DNA of 64,000 bases from the NCBI GenBank assembly GCA_937625935.1, contig OW569348.1:1-64000 (forward strand). Reading direction: 5' to 3'. The translations under genes were made by a program, and so were the position numbers. The notes beneath the pieces are model-generated. The model saw only the letters and a list, made by a program, of their open reading frames with translations. It ran no database searches and was not told the origin of the DNA. The stretch comes from Tetramitus jugosus. Taxonomy: Eukaryota; Protista; Heterolobosea. This document shows, one piece after another, positions 7,084-18,048 of this stretch. Each line of letters starts with the position of its first letter. Position 1 is the stretch's first letter.

Positions 7084-8163
7084 TCAAAATACAATCATAT
7101 ATTCATAAACACACATTTTCTCAAAGGTAATTTGTTGATTACTGTGTCTTACATCCAATAATTTATGATGAAAGCGATAGGCACATTCAGGATGCAACCA
7201 GAGTTTGCATGTTCGACAAAAATAGCGTGTATTCGATCTCACAGGTTCTCCAAACTTTATCTGCTTCCCACCTCTTGGTCGATGGATACTCCAACCTTGC
7301 ATGCACGAAACACAACGCCCCTTTATCTTATCCTTGGTGCATTTTGCAATCATATGCATCGTAGGAAGGTTTCTTAATCCCAATGATAAAGACTGGAATC
7401 CAAGATGAGTGGCCCACTGATCCAAAACCTTTTCAATAAACTCCCTCTGTGTTATCCTCGATTTTCCCTTTGCTAACTTAAATAGAAGATACGAATTGAC
7501 CATTGCCATCTTTAGAAAAGCTAAAAATACTGCTCTCTTCCACGACACATTTTTGTGAGGGCATATCTTGTAACTACTGCAGAATCGATCAAACCTGTCC
7601 ACTCCCTGCATACCAAAGTTGTAATGATGGACCATTGAGGGAATGGTCCTCTTACTACTTTCCACAGTCTCTTGACCACACACATTTGAGACGAAGTTAC
7701 AAATTCGTTTGTCAAAAAATGACAATGCAATGATTGACTTCGTGGGATCAACCAACCATTTGAATTCTTTCTTCTTGAGCCCTTTGTGGAGTCGGTTCTT
7801 GAAGATGTCCGATGGCAAGATGAAAAAGTATCTACCCTCTTTGTGCATCTCTTTTGCAAGACCAGTGCTGCCATAGTAGTTGTCTGTAACAAAAACATGC
7901 TTCTCTGCCACGTCGAACTGGTTAACAAAGTGTTTCACAACCTTCTGAGGGGTTAACTTATTTTCCATGGACTTTTTCTTCTTGTCTTTGTTGATGTTCA
8001 CCAGCAGTCGTAAAATTTCAGTGTTGGGATTTTTGTACACGGAACTCAACCAACGAGTAGTATCGCTGACTGTAGTTCCTTGCTTGATAAAAAGAGAACC
8101 ATCCTGAACAGAGATATGGTCGATGCAATTAATGCACTCAATCACACCCGACATGTCCGGCAA
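7084..8163 (-). mobile_element. piggyBac transposase, C-terminal half with Cys-rich domain; 5' part missing or chimeric
   Basis: Motifs 'VFVTDNYYGS', 'YNFGMQGVDRFD' and 'WKRAVFLAFLKMAMVNSYLLF', plus the C-terminal 'RCVSC...TRYFCRTCKLWLHPEC...FHH'. Confidence 0.9.
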
Positions 8164-9848: not shown

Positions 9849-10583
9849 TCACATCGTTCTCGACTTATCGACCATGATCTGAGCAACAGCATCAAATGGA
9901 TATTTGGACAAGTATTCTGAGAAAATAGCGAATGCTTGCTCATAATCTCTTCTATCAACACACTTGAAGCCCCTTGTATACTCAAACCAAATATCGTTTT
10001 CTGTTGTAATATCCTGCGACCATTCGTGGCTCCATTCATCTGTGCTTCTAGTTTCTCCCAGTTCATAGATGCGCAATTCATCTGTCATTTTGTCAATAGG
10101 ACGCAAGAAGAAAGAATCTTTTGCTGCTTGATAAATATTGTGAGACACCAGAATTCTTGTACCCCAAGACTCATTTAAAAGACATGCAGTGTTGGATTCG
10201 TTGGCTGCTCTTCCTATCACAATAAATATTTTGGTTGAATCAGATCCTATGTTTCCGTAGAATGATGCACCTGAACTCAATCCGATTTGAATGTTCAAAA
10301 GAGGAAAACCTCTCATTCTCCAAGCCTCCTGTAAACCTAAAACTGATTTCTGACAACCAAGAGCCGTCCGTATGGCTCTAATTCGATGATCTGACTGCGA
10401 GATCAACGTATTCCAGGGGATAACTGCATGAGAGTGTGTGTGAAAGACCAATTGAGCATTTGATTCTCTAATTTTGTCCTTAATTGCAGTTAATAGATCT
10501 TTCATGGCATCATTGACATCGTCAATCGAATATGACTCCAAGATTTGTGACATGTCGTCGAACTTTATTGTCATCACAGACAC
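9849..10583 (-). pseudogene. Class III adenylate/guanylate cyclase-like fragment, degenerate and probably a pseudogene
   Basis: Motifs 'IQIGLSSG...GNIGSD...FIVIGRAAN...LNESWGTRILVS...FFLRPID'. The ORF opens on GTG, the upstream frame is shifted and broken, and the metal-binding Asp motifs are not evident. Confidence 0.7.
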
Positions 10584-10812
10584 TGACTAAACCTGAAGTT
10601 AGTGCATTTGTCACCAAACCCTTGGAACGATAGTTTGCATGGACTGTAGAAATGAGCGTATCAGAACATGATCCTAACATGGTATTCTGCTCCACTTCCC
10701 CTTTCTTAACCGAGGACTCTTTGGATGAACTCTTCTTGATGGTAAGAGAATTGCTTATTCAGATATTCCTCAGAATCAGAATTTTCTCATTAAGTAAAGC
10801 TCAATCACATGG

Positions 10813-13222
10813 TCAAAATTCACTGCGAGATTCTGTCCCCTTACTGTCTGATAAGACAAGACGAACGAGGTTGCCAAGTCTCCAAAAGTTGTGTATTTCT
10901 CTTTCCTTATCCCTGCTCGGATTGAACATCTTTGGACAAAAGAGGTCGACCTCCATGTGCTCTTTGGGATTTCTGAATCCGTTCTGGTGTCCTTCATATG
11001 TCTTCACTATAGAATGCACAAGTATGCAATCAATGCCATCGAGTTGGAGCGAATATTTGGTCGCTGTTTCATGTCGAATGATAGGCAAGGGTATTCCTTT
11101 GCCTTGTTGATTCAAATGAATAGTATCTCCATGTTGTGAAATGAGAGGACTGACCTTAAGCAAGTTGTTCAAATCTTCGTATTCTGATGTACCATCCACA
11201 GGCACAATTCTCTTGGAGAGCAAATAGAAACGAGCATCTAATTCATTTTCAGGACCAACCAAAGAAGCACTAAACCACCTGTCGGATGCACAATTCGCTT
11301 TGATGGGCTTCAACGTGTTTGCATCGATTTTGACGACAATCTCAAGGTCCTTGTAGTGGCTGCGAGAAACAAAGCAGAAGGGAAGAGAAAAAGTAGACCT
11401 TTCCTTCACTTTCTTCCCCTTGCCCAACAGAATCAGTCTCTCCACATCTCCTTCCGAATTAATAAATGTACCAAAGGAATCTCTTATTTTCTTATGATGC
11501 TGCTTTGTGCAACTGAAAGTAGTGGTGTTTGTCTTAGTAATTGCTGATCTTCTGAACCCACCTCGCTCGGAATCAAATGGATTATTTTGTTTCTCTGTAG
11601 GGCGGACAACACTATCAAAGGATGAAGCTGGAATGGTTTTCTTCGATCGACTGACTAAATCAAGAAAAGTGTATAGAGGAATATACCTATTCAGGAGACT
11701 AGTATCCACATGGATCAGATAGTATCCTCCAAATCGAATCACCGCTTTCCATTTGTATTCTTCAGATCGACGATGCGCGACTAAACTCAGCTGTCTCTTA
11801 ATGGCATAATAGAATGAGGAGTAGTGAATGGAAAGGTCTTCAACACTGTCAAGAACACATCTATACTTTGGTTGTAAGGCATGTGTATGATGAGAATAGT
11901 TTCCAACAAAAGGTTTGAGACACACCTTCTGAACAGAGCTAGTGGCTCCACAGAATATCAACAAGGGAGATCCTTCGATAAATCGATGAAATGACTGAGA
12001 TGGATTTTGAGAATTGAAGTAACATAGATCTCTCACTAGTTTATGAACCTCAGTAAACTGTTTCGGCGTCGCCTCCACATCCAATGAAAATCTCGCTCCT
12101 TCCCTTCGAATATCTACCCGGGCACCCGTTTCCGTTCTAAAGAAATTAGAAAATGTTTCTTCGGATCCACATATCAATGCAGTTTCTCTCTTTCCTAGCA
12201 GAATAGATCTTGAGACGGGTGTGCTGTCATTTTTCATGATCAACATTAACTGAATATCTTTTGATAGAACAAGACTATAATAGGCAGATAGCATATTGGA
12301 CTCAAATTCAAACGTTTTGAAAGTATGGACGCGATTTCCAATAACAGTAGTTTCGTCTTCGCCATGGCAACTATAATACCTCAAAAAATTCAAGAAACAT
12401 TGAACTTCAACATCACAAGAGAGCTCATCAATGTTCACTTGGTGTATGAAAGTACAATATTCCTCTATTCCCGTTTCTTCACAGTTCTCAACTTCCTTGA
12501 GTACATTATGTTTTAAACAATAGCTAATGAATAACCATATGAGCTCTGATGTAGGTAACACTTGTGCATCGCATCCAACCAAACCCATATTGCGAGCCCA
12601 TGTCGTAAGTAAGAGAAGCAATGCATACATGATCGGCTTTTGCTTGATGTAAGCTCTCAGAAGATAAGTCTTATAAATCCCACTAGCTGAAGCGCATATG
12701 TCGATAGAAACATGATTACACCTTGCCTTAATTATGGGAACAGTAGCGATAACAATGCTAGAAGGTATATTCCTTGAGTCAAATATGCTTTTCTGGTGCT
12801 GTAGAGTATCGAGCGGAGTGCCTTTTTGATGCACCAAGGCTAAGTCAATGTCAGATTCATACAGGTCTTGAAGCAAGACAGCAAATGAACCATGAATGAT
12901 ATACGGTTCACAAGCTGAAAGTAAACGGTCTACTTGTTCTTTTTTTTGAAACAAACATCCAATCTGCTTTTCCCTTTCTTCAACAAAATACCGCTTCAGT
13001 TTCTGCTCCAATAGTGCACTGATTTGTATTGGTTGACTTTCTGGAAGTAATTTGGTCCAAAAATGATTTCCAATCCAAGCAAAACCAAAATATTGAGAAT
13101 TATGACTCTGATAAACAGTGTTGTACCAAGCAACAGCTTTTCGTTGCCTTTCAACTTCATTATTCACACCTCCATAAAAGTAATCTCTAAATGCAGAAAG
13201 TAGTTCATTATATCCAAGAATT
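10813..13222 (-). CDS. 3' part of the RdRP fusion gene: RdRP C-terminal (head) segment + Cid1/TUTase-type nucleotidyltransferase + KH-like domain + unknown C-terminal domain
   Basis: 'RKAVAWYNTVY...FGFAWI' matches the RdRP C-terminal KAxAWY...FxW motif. 'HGSF...ESDIDL', 'VPIIK...SIDIC' and 'LLLTTWAR' match a Pol-beta ncPAP/TUTase. 'ALICGSEETFSNFFRTETGARVDI' is KH-like. The frame stays open upstream of the GTG at 13167 as far as the inversion boundary. Confidence 0.8.
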
Positions 13223-13527
13223 GCGGGATTGGATGACTGGAAAGGATTTCCTCACTTTATGAAGAATAAGGAGGACAATGGATATCATTCAGAGAGTATT
13301 CTGGGACAATTGTTCGATAGGTGTAAATATATCGAGTCATTCCGAGTTCCTATTGTACGATCACACAATTCACTAAATGTTGAGGGTTATCAATCATACA
13401 TGAAAGAAGCTGAGGAATATTTTGTATTGTACAAACACCGAATGGAGAGTCTCTTGCAAGTTTATGAAAACACAACTGAAGAAGACCTTTGGATCAGTTC
13501 TTTTCGACCACTCGATTCTTAATTCTT
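13216..13527 (+). other. Inverted internal segment of the RdRP gene, flanked by 7-bp inverted repeats AAGAATT (13216-13222) and AATTCTT (13521-13527)
   Basis: The plus-strand ORF 13229-13522 encodes 'FPHFMKNKEDNGYHSESILGQLFD...EAEEYF..YKHRMESLLQVY..TEEDL'. This is the RdRP block that normally follows AVDxxKTG, but it lies antisense to both flanking parts of the gene. Confidence 0.88.
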
Positions 13528-16500
13528 TGACTTAGAACAATTTTCTCACCAGTTTTGATTGAATCAACTGCGCTAGAGAATAATCTTGCCAACTCAATAC
13601 AGTCAGCATCCAAAGCTCGTTGGGAACTAAAGTCCATAATGGCCGTGTGTAAATTAGCTATAGTACCCAATGTTTCATTGGATAAACCTTGTACCAAATG
13701 TTCTGCTTTGCTTTTGGAATGACCAACTTGTGTACCGACTTCGTATTCCATTGGAGGATACTCTGAAAAACAAAGTAAATCTTCGTCGTAAAACACTGAA
13801 TACTCATCTCCATCATAGTCAGATCCTGAACACATATTAGAAATGGGTCTATCTCCCTTGGTGCTAAAAACAATCACGTCCTTAACTTCATGAAGACCCG
13901 GGACATCAACCAATTCAACCTTGCGAATATCACCTGGATGGAGATGAGGACTCTTGCAAACAAATGCATGAGTGACTAAAGGATGCTGATCTGTTGAAGA
14001 AGAAAAGAAAAGTTGGTTTGGTTCCAATAATCCTAAGTGATCTGGGACACCCTTGGACATCAGACTTCTTTTGACTAAAATTCGGGCTTTGCTTCGTAAA
14101 TCTGAAACTTGAATGTTAAATATCGCAATTAGTATTTTCTGCACAAAGGGATCACACAAATTGATGTTGCGTGTTGAAATGGAATCGGGGCAAAAAGAGC
14201 TAATAGCTCGAGCTGCAGCATCAGGTTGATAGAACATCTCTTCAAAATCTAATAATTGTTCATTCAGTAAACGCAGGAATGTTGTATCAGGAATGCCCAA
14301 GGTAGATAGTAATCCGATGAGTTGTTGATTCATATGGGCAACTCTGTGACGAGAGTATCCCACAACCCTTATCTGCATGCTCGAACTCTCAAATTTTTTC
14401 ATGCTGGGTCGATACTTGTAATCAACATTGATATCAGCTTTCGTAATCATTCCTTTATGTCCAGCAAAGCGAATTTGAAACGCAGATGGTTTGGAACCGA
14501 GATGACATGCACTCGCTAATTCTGTGCATAATGAAGAAGACATGAGTCCAGCACCATCAGTAAAGTTATAGCAGTCCTTAGTAATATCACCCATCTCATG
14601 CACAGAATCTATTTTAACAGTAGCAACATGGGGAGTGAGTAACAGCCCCTGGTATGCCACTAGTTTAGAAATTGTCTTAATCGTTGAGAAGTCGCCCAAA
14701 GAGCATAAAACTTCTTCTACAGTCTTTCTACTCTGTTCGACATTCCAAAACCATGCATTTCCTTTTCTGAGCTGACTGGGAGTTCCTGCCAGGAAGTGAA
14801 AACGGCTTCCACAAATATCTAGTCCCTCTTCGAAATATTTCTGTAACACAGATTCATTTCTGGGATCATTAGTGAACTTACTCTCTTGATCTTCATCTCG
14901 GAAGTTAACGATCAAGAGATAATCAGAACCATACATTTCAGTGATAGCATTGAATCGCAAGAGTTCTGGTGGATAACATAACACTTGCTTCGGAGTAACT
15001 AACACGCGTCTAACAAACAATAACTGTTCGTAACTATCAATAGTCTCAGAAACAACCTCCCTGAGAGCTTGCGTAGGAGAAATTTCGATATCTCTTCGCA
15101 TTCTTGCTATCATTGATTGACACAACTTGGGATGAATTTCAGGTGGGAGTTGTCTCAGGAAATCAGTTGTTACTCTCATGTCAGAGTTCAAGGGACATAG
15201 AGTCAGTAAGCTCTCTACAAAATATCTCTTCTCAAACCCTAGACCATGTAGTTCCTGTGGCTCGCTATACACATCATCAATTCGCTCAACCTTAATGAAT
15301 TGAACTTTTAGAGCACTACTAGTAATGAAACTACAAAAGTCGAGCACAGACTCCAAATCTTCCTTGCAAAATTTCAGTTCAAGCACACTGCTATTTATAA
15401 TTTTAGAAGATAGAGGACGTCGTGTCATACACAAGTATAATCTAATCTCCTCTAAATTAGTGATATCTACCTTAATCCAATGAGTAATATCTTTCCAATA
15501 AATCTGGACATCTTGTCCCATATTTAAGATAAAGCTGGTTTTTTCGGCAGATATAGCGTAGAGTCCATTTTCTTGCTCTCTCCATCGAAATTTATTCGGC
15601 TCAACAAAAGCTCCCTGACATAACCGAACAAAGTTGAGGGATTTGACCGACATCGTATTGTTCGTCCATAAGATAGGTAGTACGCCTATCTTGATATCGC
15701 AACATATTCGATAAAAGAGCTCCACTGTTGTATCATACATTCCCTCTAGGATATACAATTGTTTTCCAGAAGGTAAACTGGTTTTTAGTGTTAATTTTAA
15801 ACCTTTCTCTATTGGTGATAAAACTTCACAACTATGTGATTGAATAATTTCAAGAGAAATGGCGCATCTATTGAGTATTGGCTTTGGCTGAAACTTGTCA
15901 ATAGAATCTCGAATTAATGATAACTCAGATGACTTCCTCAATCTCTCTACAATCCTATTCATTGCACCTTCATCTTCAAGATAACAAGGTGGTGCATGAG
16001 AATTCGATATGAGAATAAACTGACTGTTCACACTCCTTGCTCTTCCTCTCAATTGTATGAATGACCTCAAAGATAATCGATGATTATCGAACAAGAATAC
16101 GGCGGAACATTTGGAAACATCAAGGCCTTCTTCGATCACACTGGTTGAAATAAGTAATAGGTGATGTCCCGTTCGAAAGTCTGATAGAATTCTTTGTTGA
16201 TCATCCTCCCATGTCATTCCATCAGAGCCATTATGTCCAAACAAAATATTAGGGAACAAAAAATCGCTCAAGTCCTTCTCAGCCCTAAGCAGCTGAAGCA
16301 AAGCTCTACCTGCAATCCTTGTGGTAACAAATATTAATATTCTCTCATCGCGTATTGAATCAAAATGATTCTCTATAAACGTTCGTAGTTCTTGCATTAA
16401 CGCCTCTACTTTTGGAGACTTTTCATTTGGTACATCTTCAAGGAGCTCTTGTGTTTTCATCAATAACTCTGCATCTCCATAAACTCGCATTAGATCGAGC

Positions 16501-17870
16501 ATGACCTCTTTCGACATTTGTGTACCAGCTATTTCAATGAGCTGCAGAGTACTATGTACACATGTTAGTATATCCTCCAGCCCATTCAGTTGCTGTTGAT
16601 AGAACTTCTTTAGAAATCTTAGATATCCAATTTGACAAAAATCTTCATAGGTATGACTATAGCATGGTATTTTCTTCGTCAAAATGGATGTAAAAATAAA
16701 ACTACATTTCTCTTTCAACCTTACTTGATTACTTGTCTCAGCACATGAAATACATCTCAGCAAAGGTTGATCCTTGATAAATGTAACAAAAGAGTCTCTC
16801 TCATGATATGGATAGCGAAAAACACCTCGAAACCTTCGCATTAGATCACAACAATACGAAGCATCCATATCTCCACCAGATGATGGGGATGCTGTCAATC
16901 CCAACAGCATTGGTCTATTCAAACAGGTTTCCACATAGTCCTTAATGATTCGAGCGTATGGATGATCATTCTTTGCATGATGGGCCTCGTCGAATACAAT
17001 AATACTTGCGTGACCCAAACTAAATCGCTGATAACATAACCAATTGTCTAGTAGAAAACCCCCGGTGGTGACTATCACATTGAACTTACACTCCAATACA
17101 TCTTTTGTAATACTCTCTCTCTGTTGTGCGTTCTGACTTGTCCAAGATTGACTACACAACTCAAGCACATGTAGTCCGGTCTCGTTATAAATGTATTCAC
17201 TCTGCTGATAAACAAGAGGAATTGTTGGTACCAAAAATAATGCAATCTTTGTTGGATTCAGCTCAACCATACGCTTGATCGCCAAAATACCCACTAACGT
17301 CTTTCCTGCTCCTGTTGGTAACACTATGATAGAATTTTCTTGCATACTTTCAATAAATAACTCCATTTGATAGCGAGTAGGGATTGTGTTGTTCAATGCA
17401 GGCGGAATAAGATCCCTCTCACATCGAGGTAATTGAACGGCGACTGATTTTGCCTTCATAAGAATTGCTGGTGCTTCAACTGACTCCTGCTGAGATCTCC
17501 CGATGGGGAAAGTGTTCCATTTGAATGTCATCAAATGTTGGCAAGAATCCATCAGAGCTTTAGCGCTTTTGACCTTCAATGAATAGGATGACAGTGTTAT
17601 TCCTTTTTCCACATCGAAGCATAGCAACAGCGAAGAATCAGGACCATCCTTCGACATTGGGCCAAGTTTACGATCACACTGTGAACAATGAATCCAGAAG
17701 GGCAAAAAATTGTTCTTTCCCTCCTTCTTCGAGACCCCTCCTGACTCCAACAATTTTTCTTGACAATGTGGATGGGGAATGAGATGCACACCACCATTTC
17801 CCTTCTCGAAGAAGCAAAGGTCTTGCTCTCGACCGAGAACTGCATCACACTGTTGACATTTGAAACTCAT
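13494..17870 (-). CDS. 5' part of the RdRP fusion gene: Zn-binding RIG-I-CTD-like domain + RIG-I/Dicer-type DExD/H helicase + eukaryotic RNA-dependent RNA polymerase
   Basis: The N-terminus has CQQC...IHCSQCDRKLG. Helicase motifs are LPTGAGKT, FDEAHH, GLTASP, STSVIEEGLDV and FIQLRGRAR. RdRP motifs are FTDGAG, SAFQIRFAGHKG, RPSMKKF, KSPHLHPGDIR, SGSDYDGD (catalytic DxDGD) and AVDSIKTG. Confidence 0.95.
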   Translation of the reverse strand: MSFKCQQCDAVLGREQDLCFFEKGNGGVHLIPHPHCQEKLLESGGVSKKEGKNNFLPFWIHCSQCDRKLGPMSKDGPDSSLLLCFDVEKGITLSSYSLKVKSAKALMDSCQHLMTFKWNTFPIGRSQQESVEAPAILMKAKSVAVQLPRCERDLIPPALNNTIPTRYQMELFIESMQENSIIVLPTGAGKTLVGILAIKRMVELNPTKIALFLVPTIPLVYQQSEYIYNETGLHVLELCSQSWTSQNAQQRESITKDVLECKFNVIVTTGGFLLDNWLCYQRFSLGHASIIVFDEAHHAKNDHPYARIIKDYVETCLNRPMLLGLTASPSSGGDMDASYCCDLMRRFRGVFRYPYHERDSFVTFIKDQPLLRCISCAETSNQVRLKEKCSFIFTSILTKKIPCYSHTYEDFCQIGYLRFLKKFYQQQLNGLEDILTCVHSTLQLIEIAGTQMSKEVMLDLMRVYGDAELLMKTQELLEDVPNEKSPKVEALMQELRTFIENHFDSIRDERILIFVTTRIAGRALLQLLRAEKDLSDFLFPNILFGHNGSDGMTWEDDQQRILSDFRTGHHLLLISTSVIEEGLDVSKCSAVFLFDNHRLSLRSFIQLRGRARSVNSQFILISNSHAPPCYLEDEGAMNRIVERLRKSSELSLIRDSIDKFQPKPILNRCAISLEIIQSHSCEVLSPIEKGLKLTLKTSLPSGKQLYILEGMYDTTVELFYRICCDIKIGVLPILWTNNTMSVKSLNFVRLCQGAFVEPNKFRWREQENGLYAISAEKTSFILNMGQDVQIYWKDITHWIKVDITNLEEIRLYLCMTRRPLSSKIINSSVLELKFCKEDLESVLDFCSFITSSALKVQFIKVERIDDVYSEPQELHGLGFEKRYFVESLLTLCPLNSDMRVTTDFLRQLPPEIHPKLCQSMIARMRRDIEISPTQALREVVSETIDSYEQLLFVRRVLVTPKQVLCYPPELLRFNAITEMYGSDYLLIVNFRDEDQESKFTNDPRNESVLQKYFEEGLDICGSRFHFLAGTPSQLRKGNAWFWNVEQSRKTVEEVLCSLGDFSTIKTISKLVAYQGLLLTPHVATVKIDSVHEMGDITKDCYNFTDGAGLMSSSLCTELASACHLGSKPSAFQIRFAGHKGMITKADINVDYKYRPSMKKFESSSMQIRVVGYSRHRVAHMNQQLIGLLSTLGIPDTTFLRLLNEQLLDFEEMFYQPDAAARAISSFCPDSISTRNINLCDPFVQKILIAIFNIQVSDLRSKARILVKRSLMSKGVPDHLGLLEPNQLFFSSSTDQHPLVTHAFVCKSPHLHPGDIRKVELVDVPGLHEVKDVIVFSTKGDRPISNMCSGSDYDGDEYSVFYDEDLLCFSEYPPMEYEVGTQVGHSKSKAEHLVQGLSNETLGTIANLHTAIMDFSSQRALDADCIELARLFSSAVDSIKTGEKIVLSQRIKNRVVEKN

Positions 17871-18048
17871 CTCTGCGAACCTTTTTTTCTTGCAGAGAAA
17901 GATGGAGTTTTGACATGGAGAAACGTGAGTGTTTCAAGATGTCACCTCCTTCGAATTTTGAAGGAGGGGCAACTATTAATAACATCAGGCTGATTTGTTG
18001 TGGATTTCACAAAAAATCTGATTTGTTCGGGGAAATTAACAAAAGACA

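Follow-up and report, generated by a model that had tools for sequence, protein, structure and literature searches.

Helicase-RdRP fusions and small inversions

Proteins in which a helicase is joined to a eukaryotic cellular RNA-dependent RNA polymerase (RdRP) are already known. In Dictyostelium discoideum, RrpA, RrpB and RrpC are RdRPs with an N-terminal helicase domain (PMC3661229). A gene of related build lies on the minus strand of a 64,000-nucleotide stretch of the Tetramitus jugosus (Heterolobosea) genome, which is the first 64 kb of contig 5 (OW569348.1) of an assembly of 26.35 Mb in 56 contigs (GCA_937625935.1) and is called the window hereafter. Like the Dictyostelium enzymes, its product places a helicase domain ahead of a eukaryotic cellular RdRP in one polypeptide; unlike them, it continues for about 870 residues after the RdRP, a part that is weakly nucleotidyltransferase-like (NTase-like). 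The gene runs from 17870 down to 10813 and is interrupted in the assembly by a short inverted block. With a probability of about 0.78, the interruption is best explained by a one-off microhomology-mediated inversion that produced a truncating allele of an RNA-silencing gene, carried in a heterozygous or polyploid clone or in a mixture of two strains.

The RdRP part also resembles Arabidopsis RDR2 (PDB 7eu0, 7roz) and other plant RDRs (PDB 7w82, 7w84), with an alignment at E about 1e-61 that is continuous through AVDxxKTG, FPxFM and ESxxGxLF and covers both the first junction of the inversion and the inverted block. RDR2 differs in having neither a helicase fusion nor a long C-terminal extension. 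Among rearrangements, the closest parallel is offered by small inversions mediated by microhomology, for which fork stalling and template switching (FoSTeS)/microhomology-mediated break-induced replication (MMBIR) and alternative end joining are the known mechanisms. Such inversions share with the T. jugosus locus 2-4 bases of microhomology at both breakpoints, loss of one nucleotide at a junction, the lack of a long inverted repeat and a non-reciprocal, truncating outcome; the mechanism is read here from the anatomy of the junctions, in which a replicative and a break-repair origin look alike. Programmed inversion switches, such as bacterial invertons and shufflons or the FLP system of the yeast 2-micron plasmid, resemble the locus in that a segment occurs in both orientations in one DNA preparation. 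They differ from the T. jugosus locus, where no significant inverted repeat is present, one form is a base longer than the other, one orientation is broken, and the neighbouring open reading frames (ORFs) checked include no recombinase.

Breakpoints and structure of the inversion

The locus is contained in 20 public runs, four of which (X1, X2, X6 and X13) were aligned to positions 11300-15500 of the window. Three further contigs were compared with it: two JGI contigs (L003 and L004), retrieved with a 32-mer from within the inverted block, and a Logan contig (L005) that encodes the protein P0001. In the 6840-nt contig of X2, a soil metatranscriptome, the alignment lies on the plus strand over 11300-13240, on the minus strand over 13241-13503, and again on the plus strand over 13503-15500. 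Position 13503 is used twice, so that the collinear form has 4202 letters where the assembly has 4201. A block of 263 bases is inverted between AAAG and CTTT, with loss of a single base from the neighbouring homopolymer (Table 1); one junction is an exact microhomology join, and the other is short by one base of the A/T run.

The earlier note on this DNA, made from the letters alone, had described a block coding on the opposite strand at 13223-13520. The block itself stands, as the stretch between the upstream ORF and the downstream frame is open and coding on the plus strand, where it encodes KGFPHFM...EEDLWISS(F), residues 1457-1544 of the intact protein. Its edges were drawn 18 bases too wide on each side: the contigs of the four runs give 13241-13503, and breakpoints at 13222/13223 and 13520/13521 are ruled out by the contig joints together with the translation. 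At the 18-base margins both strands happen to be open, and the junction peptides first proposed (SQRI joined to AGLDDWKGF, and SFSTTRFL joined to ILGYNE) came from reading these margins on the wrong strand. The true junctions join SQRIKNRVVE to KGFPHFM and DLWISSF to QSSNPAILGYNELL.

A short inverted repeat, AAGAATT (13216-13222) and AATTCTT (13521-13527), extendable to a 9/10 match between TCCAAGAATT and AATTCTTTGA, had been thought to bracket the block. The two arms are present as described, and lie off the breakpoints. Among the 69 inverted pairs in a 951-base region the pair ranks 24th, and the alignment score of the flanks is matched by 12% of random window pairs at equal spacing (p about 0.12). 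Since the match is at chance level, this repeat is ruled out as the cause of the inversion.

The suspicion that one base is missing from the T run at 13501-13504 proved correct, as T4 and T5 are both seen in the run contigs. In X1 a record with T4 has 28x depth and a separate record carries T5, and L004 reads GAAAAAGG at this site. The short run is not a homopolymer error, because all four runs are free of indel differences from the assembly over 4.2 kb, and because the coding length is equal in L003 and L005; the base-level quality of the assembly is good. In the environmental haplotype L003 (4372-4379), GAAATAGG replaces GAAAAAGG at junction 1 and changes residue 1457 from K to I, indicating that the breakpoint homopolymer is itself polymorphic in nature.

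When 13241-13503 is flipped and one T is added (T5), a scripted reconstruction yields 7059 nt with a single ORF of 2352 aa. An exact flip without the extra base gives a stop at codon 1462; flipping at the margins of the earlier note reproduces the stop it reported at the second junction, at codon 1549. Its description of both flanks as free of stops also agrees with the present analysis, as the upstream ORF is open and the downstream minus-strand frame has no stop from 13221 to 10813.

Table 1. Positions in the window of the gene, the inversion and the sequence elements at or near its breakpoints.
Feature	Positions	Strand	Description
Whole fusion-gene locus	10813..17870	-	Collinear form is one 2352-aa ORF (reconstruction and L003:6-7064, both stop-free)
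Truncated ORF of the assembled (inverted) allele	13494..17870	-	1458 aa, ends RVVEKN and stop (SQRIKNRVVEKN and stop); helicase and RdRP catalytic DYDGD motif kept
C-terminal coding part	10813..13240	-	Begins QSSNPAILGYNELL, runs to the stop; severed from the upstream ORF in the inverted allele
Inverted block	13241..13503 (maximal; unique core 13245-13499)	+	263 bases; X2 plus/minus/plus, same in L003 and L004; alternative junction unitigs in X1, X13 and X6
Left breakpoint microhomology AAAG	13241..13244		Joint at 13240/13241; 2-4 letters fit both sides
Right breakpoint microhomology CTTT	13500..13503		Joint at 13503
T4 run	13501..13504		T5 in the intact allele (A5 in gene sense); inverted allele one base shorter
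Left arm of the repeat in the earlier note, TCCAAGAATT	13213..13222		Chance-level match, not at breakpoint
Right arm of the repeat in the earlier note, AATTCTTTGA	13521..13530		Chance-level match, not at breakpoint

The intact form and the product of the inverted allele

All four environmental contigs (X2, L003, L004 and L005) carry the intact form only. L003, L004 and L005/P0001 are collinear and 98-99.5% identical to the window, with an intact ORF of 2352 aa in L003 and L005 and of 2324 aa in L004, in which the 5' end is cut off. Arabidopsis RDR2 (7eu0; E 1e-61) aligns without a break between the catalytic GDLDGD loop and the end of the block, a stretch that takes in AVDxxKTG, FPxFM and junction 1. 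Judged from these sequences, the collinear form is both ancestral and functional. A word search for relatives (residues 1350-1750; proteins of 1294-4116 aa) returned a single protein, from the same species, and is no evidence of absence.

In the inverted allele a stop follows residue 1458, as had been predicted for the assembled locus, and the product is left without the end of its RdRP domain and without any of the 870-aa C-terminal part. The RdRP profile PF05183 is matched over positions 1-581 of 582 in the collinear form of L003 (E 6e-125, 418.6 bits), and over positions 1-539 of 582 in the assembled truncated ORF (E 7e-118, 395.2 bits), where the match stops at the end of the ORF. The catalytic DxDGD loop (GSDYDGDEY, aligned with GGDLDGDQF of RDR2) lies upstream of the inversion and is kept in both alleles. 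The inverted product nevertheless lacks the final 43 profile positions of the RdRP and about 870 residues at its C-terminus, and 2.7 kb that formerly coded for protein now follows the premature stop. The inverted allele is, as far as its predicted product indicates, most likely null or severely impaired. No truncated product of 1458 aa is on record in other public assemblies, a result that says little, as the entries of the genome under study may be excluded from it.

Both orientations in the culture material

Two runs of the organism, X1 and X13, contain both orientations. By k-mer depth, the junction unitigs of X1 stand at 27.7 and 28 for the assembled form and at 10 and 10 for the collinear form (2.8:1); those of X13 stand at 29.2 and 29.3 for the assembled form and at 43.4 and 42 for the collinear form (0.68:1). 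The collinear joint is also carried by X6, which comes from a different sample. As an intact collinear allele is present in the same culture material, the inverted allele is not fixed.

The presence of both orientations at substantial depth in X1 and X13 makes it very unlikely that the inverted form arose in assembly, amplification or library preparation in an organism with the intact gene only, one of the options first raised for this locus. Whole-genome amplification is a known source of inverted chimeras formed at short microhomologies, and every run examined contains the intact form. X1 and X13 moreover carry one sample label, which qualifies the exclusion of an artefact, since a single DNA preparation could pass one early amplification chimera to both runs. 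Against this, the inverted junction k-mers reach 28-29x in two separate runs and are the majority in X1, they match the assembly base for base, and no indel discrepancies occur over 4.2 kb. The assembly is probably based on long reads, to judge from its 56 contigs and the telomere-capped end. The inverted share further tracks the share of the assembled single-nucleotide polymorphism (SNP) haplotype, which a random chimera would not do.

It was also considered whether the two forms are paralogous copies, such as a collapsed subtelomeric duplication, instead of alleles or strains. The position of the gene 11-18 kb from the telomere would suit such a duplication, as would the occurrence of both forms in all culture runs. 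No second copy was found, the locus being single-copy in the 26.35-Mb assembly, and in both runs the summed junction depths are about equal to the flank depth, a comparison made within the locus. The ratio of the forms also changes between runs (2.8:1 and 0.68:1), unlike that of fixed paralogues. Paralogy is accordingly an unlikely account of the two forms.

Probable linkage of orientation to SNP haplotype

The contigs of X1 show no SNPs relative to the assembly, in keeping with contigs that retain the major allele only, and X1 is probably the source run of the assembly; the assembler took the majority form and haplotype of its source run. The contigs of X13 represent a second SNP haplotype with 33 differences from the assembly. 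X1 and X13, despite their one sample label, therefore have opposite major SNP haplotypes as well as opposite major orientations. In X6 the contigs are short and uncollapsed, and both SNP alleles stand at about half depth at many sites, which shows that mixtures of haplotypes exist in the material of this organism.

The occurrence of both orientations in X1 and X13 at unlike ratios, under one sample label and with a single SNP haplotype in the contigs of each run, is what would be expected of a reversible or programmed inversion by which a clonal population would alternate between the 2352-aa enzyme and a helicase-RdRP isoform of 1458 aa. This appearance probably has another source. Logan contigs are simplified graphs in which SNP bubbles are collapsed to the major allele and rare variants are dropped, while an inversion is not a simple bubble and survives. 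A mixture model was set up in which the minor orientation lies on the minor haplotype, so that the mean depth of a contig falls below the summed junction depth by the share of k-mers that cover SNPs. For X13 the model predicts 63.0 for the left flank, 64.2 for the inner block and 67.7 for the right flank, and 61.7, 63.0 and 67.9 were observed, where a pure clone would give 72 throughout. For X1 the predictions are 34.9, 35.3 and 36.5 and the observations 34.4, 35.2 and 31.8, where a pure clone would give 38 throughout. The depths thus fit a mixture of two haplotypes whose minor share equals that of the minor orientation, which suggests that the assembled SNP haplotype carries the inverted form and its counterpart the intact one. 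An argument for recurrence, from the same inversion on two SNP backgrounds, was dropped for these two reasons, the collapse of SNP bubbles in Logan contigs and the agreement of the depths with a mixture of haplotypes.

Other features of the locus likewise speak against a switch. The two forms differ by one base (T4 and T5), so the exchange was not conservative; the breakpoints share 4 bases only, and the longer repeat in the flanks is a match expected by chance. Translation of the inverted form ends early, leaving 2.7 kb untranslated and the final 43 profile positions of the RdRP missing, and 4/4 environmental contigs hold the intact form only. A non-exhaustive scan of the neighbouring ORFs checked found no serine or tyrosine recombinase. 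The isoform switch offered as an option in the earlier note is thus unsupported and has little probability. Equally doubtful is a broader form of the idea, a recurrent, locally templated process of small inversion by which cells would interconvert, or repeatedly generate, a full-length and a truncated RNA-silencing polymerase; if true, it would amount to on/off or isoform control of RNA interference at the DNA level in a eukaryote.

Several observations weigh against a single inverted allele linked to one haplotype. The reversal of the ratio between X1 and X13 is unexplained by a simple 1:1 heterozygote, and the right flank of X1 fits the mixture model poorly. The phase between orientation and SNPs rests on contig depths and not on spanning reads: of the SNPs at 13160, 13321, 13470 and 13538, the nearest two (13470 and 13538) lie just outside the 31-mer junction unitigs. 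The inverted junctions are documented in X1 and X13, two runs under one sample label. The discrepancy between X1 and X13 would fit a mixed culture or an unequal dosage of haplotypes in a polyploid.

Origin of the inverted allele

Of the options considered at the outset, an inactivating inversion mediated by microhomology is the one supported here, with a microhomology of 4 bases, the loss of one base and an allele that is not fixed. The rearrangement may have arisen in a single non-conservative error of repair or replication. Candidate routes would be template switching (MMBIR/FoSTeS) or microhomology-mediated end joining of two breaks. The assembled haplotype contains no further stop or frameshift, suggesting that the lesion is young relative to the divergence of the haplotypes. 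Relaxed selection on this haplotype was considered from its private substitutions (14 non-synonymous and 6 synonymous, against 51 and 33 overall) and set aside, as these counts are too low to be used and the alignment of L004 is wrong beyond a one-codon indel.

Domain architecture and chromosomal setting

In the collinear form, Pfam profiles identify DEAD, ResIII and Helicase_C domains, the eukaryotic cellular RdRP and a weak PF22600 match. The last lies in the C-terminal part (about 850-870 aa; 10813-12300 on the minus strand, L003:4506-7061), with E 2.8e-4 and a score of 21.4 bits where the cutoff is 27. Comparisons of the same part with TUTase4 (E 0.23) and GLD2 (E 0.58) gave weak matches, and for about 400 of its residues nothing matched. 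L003, which corresponds to 9936-17875 of the window, starts 5 nt upstream of the ATG and continues for about 880 nt beyond the stop; as it is collinear with the genomic DNA across the 7-kb gene, the gene is without introns.

The first 360 positions of the window consist of a long CCCAAA (TTTGGG) telomere array with a few variant units near the tip, and the gene is subtelomeric. Between the telomere and the gene lies a fragment of a piggyBac-like DDE transposase (7087-8163, minus strand), matching positions 169-349 only of PF13843. The neighbouring ORFs checked also include a CN-hydrolase.

Implications

The lesion adds one more case to a well-known class of structural mutations, and is otherwise an ordinary structural variant. 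For the analysis of similar loci, it illustrates that contig graphs from short reads retain the two versions of an inversion but merge SNPs, and can thereby mimic a switch in a pure clone. The reference assembly presents the helicase-RdRP fusion gene as broken, and an annotation based on it would split the gene into two or three fragments and overlook the 2352-aa protein. As wild material and part of the culture carry an intact gene, work on RNA silencing in this organism should use the collinear allele and verify which allele or strain is in hand.

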